A stretch of DNA of 63,076 nt, the filler included, from Choristocarpus tenellus KU-1152 (lineage: Eukaryota; Protista; Phaeophyceae), in assembly GCA_964200185.2 (NCBI GenBank). It is 9 parts of 9 records of this genome, joined end to end, with 100 filler letters (N's around TTAATTAATTAA, not from the genome) between each part and the next. Parts side by side here need not be neighbours in the genome. Positions count along the whole stretch, not along the records: positions 57,758 to 63,076 come from CAXNAD020011176.1; 8 more parts are not named here. The stretch is one strand, 5' to 3'. Position numbers and translations under genes: made by a program. The notes beneath the pieces are model-generated. The model worked only from the letters and a program-made list of their open reading frames with translations. It did no database searches and had not been told where the DNA came from. Below, one piece after another: positions 57,658-63,076 of this stretch (position 1 is the first letter of the stretch; every line of letters starts with the position of its first letter).

Positions 57658-57824
57658 NNNNNNNNNNNNNNNNNNNNNNNNNNNNNNNNNNNNNNNNNNN
57701 NTTAATTAATTAANNNNNNNNNNNNNNNNNNNNNNNNNNNNNNNNNNNNNNNNNNNNTCCCTTCCGCACATACCACGCTGACCTGCTTTTTATCGATCCC
57801 CATCACACCCTCTCAATCTTCGCC

Positions 57825-60800
57825 AAGTCCAGCATTCCCTCAACAACAACCCACCCGCCCGCCGAAGGCGCTGCACACGGATCGATAATGTGGGACAGCG
57901 ATCCAAAGGGCATGTCGTCGCTCCTAGAACATCACTATCTGGGCACATACCGGATGAAACTGGGCAACATCACATGCACCGAGATGGTGCATCCACTGAG
58001 CGAGAGTGGCCTCGCGCGCGTAAGCAAGTCCATGCAGGAGAAAGGCTGGTGGAGCAGTTTGCTCCGTCTATCGTGATCCAGCGAGACTGTTTAGGTAATG
58101 GAGACCAGCTCACCGCCAAAACTGCGCTTACCATTCAAGGGCGAGTATTGGATGGAAACCATAGAATAACGGTGCTCAAGAGAGAGTTTGATCCCGAACG
58201 CGCTTTCATGATGCGGGTCTACATGGAGTTCAACCAAGCAGAAGAGAGGGTAATTGCAAACGGTGGGTGATGGAGTGTTTTCGTTATTCCATGATCCCCG
58301 GGCGACTCTGATTAACCAAGCAACAAAGTAAGTGGAGTGTTTACGTGGTTCCATGATCGCCTGATGACTGTTCTGATGTACAAAGTTGTTGCCGACTTTC
58401 CTTATCTTGGTTCATCGTCAGTGAGTCCATTGAGGATCTTTTCGTTGGTGATCTTTTCTTCCCTCGTGGTATTTCTGTCTGCAGCAGCATATTGCTCCCT
58501 ACTGCATGCCGCGTGTGTCCCGACCGCTCCCCACCTAACCCTTGTCCCATTCGCCCACTGGACCGCCACGCTTATAGCATTCAACGACGCGACCGAGAGT
58601 GTGGTTGAGCGCACACTGTACGATAAGATATTTTTTCACCACGAGCTCCAAGAATCTATCAAGCGACAGACGAAGAAAAAAGAAGTGTCAATAGTGGAGA
58701 TCTGCACAATGTACAAAAGGGTGAGGGAGTTGTCAACGTTAGTGAGATGGTGGCGCTATAGTCCTCCTCTAGTTGGGTTACAGCTGTTGTGAAATCCCTC
58801 TGTGTCCTCCTATTCAACCTAAGTTGATATAGTTATCCCGCGTTTAGGAACCCTGTCAACCAACTTACGGATTTACGGCTGACCACGTGGTAGTATGTAT
58901 GAGTGGTTAACCACAGACGAACAATGAATATATCCTTGTTTGTTTCATCATTAGGCCAGGCCGCTGAATAACCCCCATACACACTCATACATACCCCGTT
59001 GGCGCGGAAATAACAATGCCTCATCCTGGCTGACTGGGTGCATGATGTTTTCCTTTTCTGCTCATCACCAAGGTGGGCGTTGCTCCCCCGTCGAAATCAA
59101 CTCTACGAAACTGGCAGAAAGGCGTAAAGTCCCTTAAACCAGAGTCCTTCGAGGTACGGAAGGAAGTGTGTGAGAGCAAGGCACCGCAGGTCGACCGCCA
59201 CGCAGTCACACTGAACTATTTCAGTCGCGAGGAGTTTGCCGACTTCACTTCTCTCTAGCAGGGGCTATGCATCCATCTGCTTGCTAGGCAAGTCAAACCG
59301 CCGCTGTGTTTTATCGTGTAGACAGCAGTAAGCGCAATGTATGCAGGTCGCAGGACATTGCACATTGACGTGAAATAAGTGTCTCCTATGATGAAGAATA
59401 TTGTCTGCCATTGTTGTGTCGAACGAAGAACCCTTCATAGTATTATGTAGATTCAACCAACAGTGTGTGTTTCCTGATTATGCGCGCTGTTGTCTGTCAT
59501 GAACTACAACTATCGATCCATGAATATCTAATGCATGGGCGACCCTTTCGTCATCACTACCTGTGCATTGTTCTCGTTGACGTCCTTCATGGCCATTCCC
59601 TTTTTGCAGATACAAGTCGTTCAACAGGAGGGTTCCTACGGCGAGGGACTACAAGGACATCGAATCGGACGCGCACATGTCTGAAATGGTTGTCTCGCAC
59701 ATGAGGCAGATTGTGCCCAAGGAGAAGTGGACACGAGAGCTCCAAAGGTTTGTAAATGGTGGAAGTTATAGCGGTTTCTTCCTTTTTTTCCTTTTCCGTA
59801 TCTCCAGTGCACCCATACGTGGCCATGCGCCCCTCAATTGAAAAATATACTGTCAGCATAGTTCTTGGCATCGCACTTATTGGCTGTTGCAAAACTTCTT
59901 TTTTTGACGTTACGTGAATGATGCACGGGCTGCCAGGGAAATGAACAAGCTCGCATATGAGAACGGCAATATGCACGACATCTGGGTCAAGCCCAACTAC
60001 GAGGAGAGGAAGAGGGAGGTGGCCGAACTTCTGGAGAAGGTTTTATCTGGCGACCAACAAGCGGGGCCCGTCCGGCAGCTGAGGGCAAACATCGCGACGG
60101 TAGTCGGAATGAAACCCATGCAACGGGTCAGAGCCGTGAGTGTGCCTCCTGTGTTGGTAGTTGTAGCTGAAATATGACTTGTACAAAAACAATTAGTTGA
60201 CGCTTCGTAGGATTCGTAGCGGGTCTTCGTCATCATCATGAGCGACAGAGTTGCCTTCCCTACAACAAGCGATGCTATTTTGTCAGTTCTAGTCTTTCGT
60301 TGCTAATAGTGGGAATAGCCAATCATTTCCTTCTACTCTAGACAACGATCTTCGTCAATCTCCACCTCGTTTCTGCCTCCAACACGTGTCACTGTCGTAA
60401 CCTACAGACTGGCGTCCTCGACATAGACTTCTTTCAAACTATTTCGCCCTGCAAGCCGCATCCATTAAACACGTTCACCACATAAACCGATAGGTTTGCT
60501 CCGTTGTTCGGTTGACATGCTATCGTAACTCCATTACACGCTCCCATTTTTAACGTTACCATCGCCCCCTCCTCTCCTCAACAACGTCCTCCGCCGTGCC
60601 CAACACCAGATTATCGAGAAGGACTGAGTGAAAGTATCTTAGAGGGTACGAGTTTTGCCCTGTTTGTCCATTTGGGACTTGGCTTCCCATGTTTATTTAT
60701 TACATATCCCTACTCCAAAATGTTTTGGGGTAGGTAAAATGTACATGTTATGAGTAAGGTTTGTCCGGAACAAGGATATTGACATTTCCTAACAAGCACG

Positions 60801-63076
60801 ATAAGCCAAAATTACATCAAAATCGCAACGTTGGATTTTGACCCCAAATGGACACGGCCCTACCCTCTAAGATACTTTATCTCACTCAACTCTACGCGCT
60901 TACCTCACCACCTGGGATTGGAAATACCAGGATGTCCTCAACCAGATCAACCTCCACCAGGTCCACAGCGGGCCGGCCGGTCATGGCAGCGGCGCAGACG
61001 TCCAGAGCAAGAACGGATCGGCATCAGATGGCCGTGAGAAAGAAGACAAGAGAGGGTGCGAACATAGAGGAGGAAATGGAAACGAGGGAGGAGACGAACA
61101 TGAAGGAGGGGAAGAAGACGAGGGAGGGGACGGACTGCCACACAGGGAAGATACGGGCGCAGGGGGGTTCTGTCGGCAGCGTTCCTGGTGTGGAAGAACA
61201 ACAAAACGGTCATGGAGGGTGGAACGCGGGCGTTTGCTGTACTGGATGCAATCCTCCGCCTACGTCTCGGTGAGTTATGTAGTTGTAACGGTGCACACAG
61301 GGATGGTGGGTAATTAATGGCGTAAGATTGGTTTCCATCCAATCTCCCGAACGGCTAACTAGGTTATCTCTTTTCAGCGGTGCACGCCAGTAAACCGGTG
61401 GAACTTGCGGGGTCCCTCTGTGTGTGGTGCTGCAGACGCTACCCACCCGTCTCTTTATTTTCCACTGTCCGATTGTGTGTGTTAATGCATGTACATCACC
61501 GACTGTTATATCTCACCTGTACTACTTTGTACTGTTTTGCGCCACCAATTTCGTGGTACTTCGTAAACGTGCATCCCCGCGTTGCGTTATTGCGTCCAAC
61601 TAATGATTTCGAAAAATACTAACCTGCCTCTTTAACGCTCTCCTTCGATGACACAAGCGACAGGTATTCATGTCCAAAGTGCTCCATCACACGTATGGGC
61701 GAATGTGCCTACGCGGAGACTGTAGGCGACGAGAGGCACAAGGATCGATTATGTATCAATTGCCCCATGGCACAGGAGGGCAGCGAAGGGTCTGGATCGG
61801 CGGGGAAGGAAACGGCAGGTCGGGGCAGGGGCAAGGGTAAGGATAAACGTAAGGCAAGGAGCGCGGGCGGGTCACCCACCGGACAAAGTCTTTTACGTCC
61901 CCCCTCACCCAGCGGACATGGAGAAGTGCATGTGGGTCTCGGTGTGGTTGCACATCATACGGACATACAAGTCGTCTCTACGTGTTCCGTTTCACATTGC
62001 TTTGCACGTGGGTCTTGGCTGCTTGTACATCATGTGGATTGCTTGTCCTTTGTGCATTGGATGTGTCGTTTTTTTGGAGGTTTCCATGGACCATGGAACT
62101 TAATGTTTTTACGTCTACCCTCCTTGCACGAGATGTATCTCATGGGTCTGGCGTTGTGGAGGGTGCGCCTTGACTTTTTGGGGATGCCGTCGAAATATTG
62201 TCAGGACCTCACTCAATGGTACGATTGCCTGCACTGTCGCTTACAACGCTGTCCTTGTTGTGCTGTCTGTATACCGTGTCGTGTGTCATGATGTCGAACC
62301 AGGACTACTGAGAACACTGCACTACACGACCTTCGCCCTCTCGACCCTACGATACCCTTAGACAGCCTGAAAGAGTTCGAGTTCCGTAACGCGCCAAAGC
62401 TCGCCATAGTGTCCATTGCCGATGAGCCAATACTCCTCAACGACGAAGAGGCGACCAATGAACACTTGCGCACGGTGATTAAGTGCTTGCAGATGAAGCT
62501 ACATCCTCAGGGCACCATCGCGCTATTTGTGCACCGCCCGTGGGCCGTGCACTTACACCGCCTACACAGTGAGTTCGGGAGTTCACCAGCGCTGAAATAC
62601 GGGGTATATTGTTCACTACACGATTTTTGCCGTCTTTCCTCCTATTACAGGATTTCCTATAGTTTGCATCTCTTTTTTCCATTTGTTATTTGCCTTGCGT
62701 TCCACAAAAATAGGACTATTATAATGTTAGTGGTATGAGATTTCATGAAACTCTACCATACCTACTTGTGTGATGACACTGTCAAGTTTGACGCATGCTG
62801 GACCCACGCGCTCGCTCCCGCCTTCTCTTCATTCTGGACCTCTTCTCGCGTCGAAGGCGGGCTTGGTTGTGGAGGATAATCCCCTGCTTGTAATATACAA
62901 CACGAGGGGGAGGGGCGCCCTGTCACAGGCACTGATAACCATCTCAGATCTTGCCTGGACATGATTCTTCTCTCGCACAACGGTGGGACAGAGTACACAT
63001 GCAACTAGGGAGTCACCATCGACCACATCTTTGGCCATGGGCGTCGTGCATATCCTCCGGTGCTCCAAACCATGTG
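57825..63076 (+). pseudogene. Multi-exon gene: ParB/Srx domain, putative HTH region, acidic linker, PHD-like finger and beta-class N4/N6 MTase-like domain; disrupted copy, runs off the window end
   Basis: Exons ~57825-58262, 58578-58720, 59073-59153, 59610-59748, 60610-61269, 61658-~61880, ~62133-62218, ~62366-62603, ~62857-end. Motifs SESGLARVSKSMQEKGW..APSIV, RVLDGNHRITVL, CTGC..CPKC..MGEC..CINC, GDAVEIL, KLHPQGTIALF. Start codon mutated to AAG; frameshifts; MITE insertion. Confidence 0.72.
60626..60883 (+). mobile_element. MITE family A inserted in an exon of the ParB-domain gene, TSD ACT
   Basis: Removing the element and one ACT restores IIEKDSTLRAYLTTWDWKY. Confidence 0.92.

Follow-up and report, generated by a model that had tools for sequence, protein, structure and literature searches.

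What kind of gene joins a ParB/Srx domain to a DNA methyltransferase-like domain across spliceosomal introns in a brown alga, on what DNA does it travel and what might its product do? We addressed this question for positions 57758-63076 of a 63,076-nt stretch of DNA (the window) deposited under Choristocarpus tenellus KU-1152 (GCA_964200185.2). A first-pass annotation, made from the sequence alone, had read this part as a spliced fusion of ParB/Srx, helix-turn-helix (HTH)-like, PHD-like and beta-class methylase-like modules carried on a eukaryotic mobile element. Our analysis indicates that it is very probably a decayed copy of an accessory gene carried by a giant Sola-1-type DNA transposon from a brown alga, probably C. 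tenellus or a close relative. For the gene as a whole, the account that we favor, and consider moderately probable, is that it encodes a noncatalytic protein that binds its own transposon.

RESULTS

One spliced gene in a multicopy family

We built a 10-exon gene model (Table 1) from splice contexts, annotated homologs and homologous loci (given L-numbers below), and the spliced model was queried exon by exon. The splice 58262/58578 matches that of P0002 and P0008, which are proteins annotated in Choristocarpus and Sphacelaria, and the peptide of the micro-exon with a GC donor is kept across distant copies. Because the ParB and methylase-like exons are collinear and on the same strand of one 8.4-kb Sphacelaria contig (L003; exons A, B, C, D, E, F, G, I, M and O), and the exons from the linker to the C terminus are collinear on L014 (exons I, J, K, M, O, Q and R, comprising the linker, the finger, the methylase-like domain and further exons past the window edge), we conclude from the sequence that the multi-module spliced gene is real and is one gene, with the modules in the order first proposed; a reading as separate genes was not borne out. 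In run X3, depth over the introns was low and joints led from 60135 to the exon at 60610, from 61932 to 62308/9 and from 62566 to 62840, a pattern that looks like spliced transcripts of other copies, X3 itself not being on record as RNA. About 720 codons lie within the piece, and more exons follow beyond its edge.

The peptides quoted in the first-pass annotation were all found in the sequence, and its exon 59073-59153, the acidic Gly-rich linker, the Cys-rich module split after 61269 and the C-terminal exons were confirmed, but it had missed exons 4, 5 and 6, a nested transposable element and the point, at 60610, where the linker exon begins. The intron that it placed at 61269/61658 exists, but L001 and L014 conserve the acceptor at 61663/61664 instead, both acceptors being in frame. 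The peptide LFGDAVEIL, with which it had the methylase begin, is preceded by an in-frame TGA and belongs to an intron across which both P0001 and an X3 joint splice.

The whole 5.3-kb piece belongs to a multicopy repeat family. Contigs from four runs of one study, placed on 30 bins, cover all of the bins in every run at 85-99% identity (mostly 90-95%), with up to about 47 distinct contigs over single places, although their depth yields no copy number; a single-copy host gene was thus not borne out. The closest named relatives are from C. tenellus (79% in exon 9 and 83% DNA identity with introns included), Sphacelaria rigidula and Ascophyllum nodosum. The family, described from one Ectocarpus element, thus takes in at least three further genera of brown algae. 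Exon 9 appears to be under purifying selection between distant copies, given rough dN/dS values from short exons of 0.22-0.46 between distant copies (0.22 against Sphacelaria, with dS saturated) and 1.0 between two close decayed copies. Three Ascophyllum-type loci (L002, L030 and L031, with the gene at about 10001) retain, of the exons, only the first and, 1.6-3.8 kb downstream of it, a stretch like the last; these are probably internally deleted nonautonomous elements. One divergent family member (L008-L013) occurs with identical sequence in several marine metagenomes.

The proposed carriage on a mobile element was supported both by these copies and by a neighboring gene. In L004, L007, L008, L009 and L029, the last being a Choristocarpus copy with 83% DNA identity to the window, a minus-strand gene stands head-to-head beside exon 1. 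Pfam gave no name for it, but its motifs GSM.AAG.PVC, CKGT and DFM.C..CTL match by eye those of the published Sola1-1_Ec32 transposase, suggesting a Sola-1-type transposase. Between this gene and the ParB gene in L029 (positions 1088-1798) lies a three-copy 269-bp tandem array with long palindromes (folding z of -5 and -6), which is a candidate binding site of the ParB protein. Repeats of 113 bp that have inverted arms stand upstream of the gene in Sphacelaria (L003:267-500); they could be an array or a terminal repeat.

Searches of wider scope added little. The piece had no match in Rfam, the gene had no relative among viral contigs, exon 9 retrieved no relative in metagenome scans, and one further homolog search returned the query itself alone. 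Sequence searches of the Protein Data Bank (PDB) gave no match, and Pfam gave none on single exons and, on homologs, weak matches to ParB-clan families and nothing else; these domain searches covered single exons, while the finger and the methylase-like domain are each divided by at least one intron. The actinobacterial contig L015 was a false match from the metagenome scans, and P0006, P0016, P0024, P0025 and P0032 were discarded as spurious, their long matches being of low complexity.

The ParB/Srx domain, the HTH region and the Cys-rich finger

The N-terminal domain has a ParB/Srx fold, as judged from an AlphaFold model of the natural homolog P0008 built on an alignment of 24 pieces that included the window exons (predicted local distance difference test [pLDDT] score, 82). 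The top Foldseek match was ParB 6sdk (E 1.5e-4), all 50 of the rows listed were ParB/Noc/KorB/Srx-family structures, and structural comparison matched the model to PadC (Z 9.4; root mean square deviation of 2.5 over 95 residues), with sulfiredoxin also among the matches. These results bear out the ParB/Srx assignment of the first-pass annotation. The GxxR-type nucleotide-binding box is present as DGNHR in the window and as DGxHR in 21 of 25 homologs; the bacterial box, GERR, differs. An HTH after this domain is plausible from its position and from the helix pattern conserved at the expected place; the P0008 model ends within this region, at low confidence.

The Cys-rich module had been called a PHD finger. 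Counting across the intron after 61269 gives eight ligands, so a zinc finger is likely on sequence grounds. A PHD finger has C4HC3 ligands with C-x4-H-x2-C spacing and a Trp ahead of the last Cys pair. The homologs have C-x3-H-x3-C spacing and no Trp, the window has Arg in place of the His, and the larger half of the finger alone had no profile or sequence match in Pfam or the PDB. Identity as a PHD histone reader is therefore not supported by the sequence. The linker in Sphacelaria is joined directly to exon 9 with no finger module, and the finger, as far as the aligned copies indicate, comes and goes, being present in some and absent from others.

The methylase-like domain

The C-terminal part had been read as a beta-class methylase, and for this the fold received some support but the catalytic residues did not. 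Profile alignment of exon 9 with the motif IV-VI region of 13 beta-class methylases, scored against column shuffles, gave an hhalign score of 18.7 versus a shuffle maximum of 15.9; the Sphacelaria version (P0040) gave 7.4 bits versus 2.0, the window's own exon does not score and later exons score within the shuffle range. Seven of the 10 atlas rows for exon 9 were of S-adenosylmethionine (SAM)-dependent methyltransferase type, an N6_N4_Mtase cluster (template modeling [TM] score, 0.55) was among the 10, and an atlas feature search gave a weak methyltransferase lead for exon 9 and an unrelated lead for an L014 exon. Motif-like stretches stand in beta-class order over three exons. A beta-class methylase-like fold is weakly supported by these alignments and models.

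Motif IV, [DNS]PP[YFW], was absent from all eight homologs of exon 9 sampled, which span 30-77% identity. After the predicted strand, in the place of DPPY, they read SIAxEP, SIGAEP or a DLSRET-like sequence, and ahead of the strand stands NAPK, DPPM or TPPK, in no case with the aromatic residue, so that no catalytic motif was present in either register. The SAM-binding motif I belongs near the C terminus, past the edge of the window piece. In L014, the only homolog that reaches it and itself a decayed copy, that place reads GDTVVSLSAE, which is degenerate and not FxGxG. The methylase-like part thus looks catalytically dead in the sampled copies. We considered that intact copies on the same element might instead encode active methylases (N4-cytosine or N6-adenine) by which the transposon that carries them is marked, which would agree with the published domain prediction for the Ectocarpus protein (PMC12477816), with the alignment of exon 9 above shuffles and with the N6_N4_Mtase cluster. 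Given the missing motif IV and the degenerate motif I, however, we consider active methylases unlikely.

The C-terminal domain could also be another alpha/beta domain with no methylase ancestry, in a ParB-type DNA binder with unspecified partners. The model of exon 9 alone (pLDDT 63) had no Foldseek hit under E 0.001 and matched many SAM methyltransferases with Z values of 4.3 at most, a level shared by other folds (the best Z, 4.4, being a tie that included hydrolases), single exons had no Pfam, PHROG or PDB sequence match to a methylase (PF01555), and the later exons were within the shuffle range, all of which would fit such a domain. The methyltransferase-type atlas rows, the beta-class order of the motif-like stretches and the independent published call in Ectocarpus argue against it, and we regard this origin as quite unlikely.

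Decay of the window copy

The window copy is a pseudogene that, from its sequence, would be unable to make the protein. It has a 1-nt deletion after 58049 in exon 1, where other copies have an extra C, that shifts the frame, a 1-nt insertion near 61159 in exon 7, an 8-nt deletion near 61913 in exon 8 and a 1-nt deletion near 62909 in exon 10 that shifts the frame; these four frameshifts are joined by a stop at 63006-63008, by the loss relative to close copies of AG at the acceptors of exons 6 and 10, and by a miniature inverted-repeat transposable element (MITE) in exon 7. The first-pass annotation had seen a few indels and had corrected them; the indels are present, but since other copies are open at the same places, they are real decay. 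This copy is dead, and its value is only that of a pointer.

The MITE fits the nonautonomous elements of ANT-targeting (Pangu-type) Harbingers in its sequence features, the ANT target rule having been described previously (PMC12477816). Its summed depth is about 100-fold higher, empty sites exist in contigs, and the X3 joint from 60135 to exon 7 runs without it. Members of this very abundant family are inserted at three places in two copies of the gene, namely at the site in the window and at L001:1080-1331 and L001:2706-2894, and one of those in L001 lies at the start of the finger exon. In the window, the initial part of intron 1 holds a local 37-nt duplication (58271-58307 and 58333-58369; 81%).

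Table 1. Exons and other features of the ParB/methylase-like gene, in window coordinates
Feature	Position	Strand	Basis
Exon 1: ParB/Srx N-terminal domain with DGNHR box; start codon is a candidate	57888..58262	+	Splice match to P0002/P0008; fold model
Exon 2: end of ParB domain and subsequent helices	58578..58720	+	Same splicing in P0002 and P0008; kept in L003, L004, L007 and L008
Exon 3: putative HTH recognition helix, at the place of the ParB DNA-binding domain	59073..59153	+	44-63% identity in four relatives
Exon 4: 29-nt micro-exon, GC donor	59259..59287	+	Match in L003, L004 and L008; splice context
Exon 5: domain without assigned fold	59610..59747	+	30-48% identity in L003-L007
Exon 6: domain without assigned fold; acceptor CG, not AG, in window copy	59910..60135	+	Splice context; X3 joint departs at 60135
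Exon 7: conserved stretch, acidic Gly-rich linker and first Cys pair	60610..61269	+	Single open frame in L001; X3 joint from 60135
Nested 258-bp MITE inside exon 7, 23-nt terminal inverted repeats (GAG...CTC), 3-nt target duplication ACT	60626..60883		Empty sites; depth
Exon 8: remainder of Cys-rich finger and basic linker	61664..61931	+	Homologs L001/L014 and P0001
Intron containing LFGDAVEIL peptide (62174-62200), noncoding	61932..62302	+	P0001 splicing; X3 joint
Exon 9: first part of methylase-like domain (motif IV-VI region), no DPPY-type motif	62303..62568	+	Homolog comparison; model
Exon 10: more methylase-like strands, ends at piece edge	62837..63076	+	Open and longer in L014

DISCUSSION

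Our findings suggest that a family of spliced genes in brown algae encodes a bacteria-derived ParB-type protein that belongs to Sola-1-type transposons. A host gene family, or two neighboring genes wrongly joined, would explain the GT-AG introns and the annotation of the gene among unnamed host proteins, with three separate models for it in Sphacelaria. Given that the gene is multicopy with its introns, that introns of close copies are as conserved as exons (82-85% versus 85-87% identity), that a transposase is linked to it and that its exons are collinear and in frame, with X3 joints across the linker, we find this very unlikely. Descent from an endogenous giant virus of the phaeovirus type is extremely improbable, given the ten spliceosomal exons, the lack of a relative in viral contigs, the transposase neighbor and a report of Discosporangiales without integrated proviruses, even though viral inserts are numerous in brown algae and viruses can have ParB and methylase domains.

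Several points limit or weigh against assigning the gene to Sola-1 elements as a noncatalytic binder. The linkage to the transposase is seen in relatives only, since the transposase and the element ends lie outside the piece, and no transposase was found within 10 kb in the Ascophyllum-type loci L002, L005 and L006. Terminal inverted repeats and a 4-bp target duplication, which belong to those ends, were not resolved in the Ascophyllum-type loci either. A repeat-finding tool detected no palindromic array upstream in L004 or L007. The likeness to the Ectocarpus accessory gene is to its published description rather than from a protein alignment, and none of the search hits was recognizable as the 1104-aa Ectocarpus protein. 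The methylase fold is weak, given the empty profile, PDB and Foldseek searches, and the methylase part is represented in the sample by fragments only, several of them decayed, so that an active subfamily may be missed.

For intact copies, we propose the following scheme, which we hold tentatively and at slightly less than even confidence as a whole. The gene would be transcribed away from the transposase over a shared upstream region. Its ParB domain would bind a nucleotide triphosphate and dimerize, the HTH would bind repeated palindromes within the element as its presumed target, and the protein may spread from there. Given the apparent lack of catalytic and SAM-binding motifs, the C-terminal domain, its methyltransferase-like fold kept, is taken to be a module for DNA binding or scaffolding rather than a writer. 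The protein would thereby recognize its own element and might control its chromatin or the transposase promoter. A bolder version, which we think improbable, is a eukaryotic ParB/parS-like system on giant Sola-1 elements, in which a nucleotide-gated clamp loads on the palindromic array between the two promoters and spreads, and the dead methylase fold, with a zinc finger in some lineages, shields the element from silencing or joins its distant ends. If true, this would offer an uncommon example of the bacterial ParB mechanism acting on nuclear chromatin, in a lineage that has lost most DNA methylation and Polycomb repressive complex 2 (PMC13076208). Brown algae are mostly without DNA methylation, and Discosporangium keeps DNMT1.

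Relatives of each module are known from other settings. The bacterial CTP clamps ParB, Noc and KorB differ from our protein in their nucleotide-binding box, and the gene described here is spliced and has no ParA partner that we could see; they share with it a ParB/Srx fold followed by a region that is, in our protein, putatively HTH-like, and in phage ParB-methylase loci ParB is likewise linked with amino-methylases (PMC4738411). The bdelloid N4CMT (PMC8885841) is another prokaryote-type amino-methylase fold in a eukaryote, there together with a chromatin reader, a chromodomain, but it is a host enzyme and active. The methylase domains of DIRS1 (PMC4738411) are, as ours seems to be, an inactive prokaryote-type amino-methylase fold on a transposon, but they belong to another methylase group and lie inside a retrotransposon polyprotein. 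In red algae, Plavaka elements have accessory genes for ParB and methylase domains next to inverted-repeat arrays (bioRxiv 10.1101/2025.02.11.637652), and their PAG2/PAG3 parallel our case in a transposon-borne ParB protein by tandem inverted-repeat arrays and a transposon-borne N6-methylase domain. There, however, ParB is fused to a 2-oxoglutarate oxygenase and the methylase to SET, in separate genes of EnSpm/Plavaka elements.

The closest known system is Sola1-1_Ec32 of Ectocarpus, a 21.5-kb element with a 1104-aa ParB-like and N4/N6-methylase gene on the strand opposite the transposase, and such accessory proteins have been proposed to bind the element that carries them and to modify it (PMC12477816). 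The novelty implied by the first-pass annotation is lost, since the same kind of gene and the idea of self-binding were published in 2025 (PMC12477816). Both genes come from brown algae, combine ParB-like and methylase-like domains opposite a Sola-1 transposase and are compatible in size, given the further exons beyond the codons counted here. They differ in that ours is from another brown-algal order and is a broken copy, and that its Cys-rich finger is not mentioned, nor its missing motifs discussed, in the description by which the Ectocarpus gene is known here. What seems new relative to the published kind, from the sequences compared, is a methylase-like part without its working residues together with the gain of a zinc finger in some copies.

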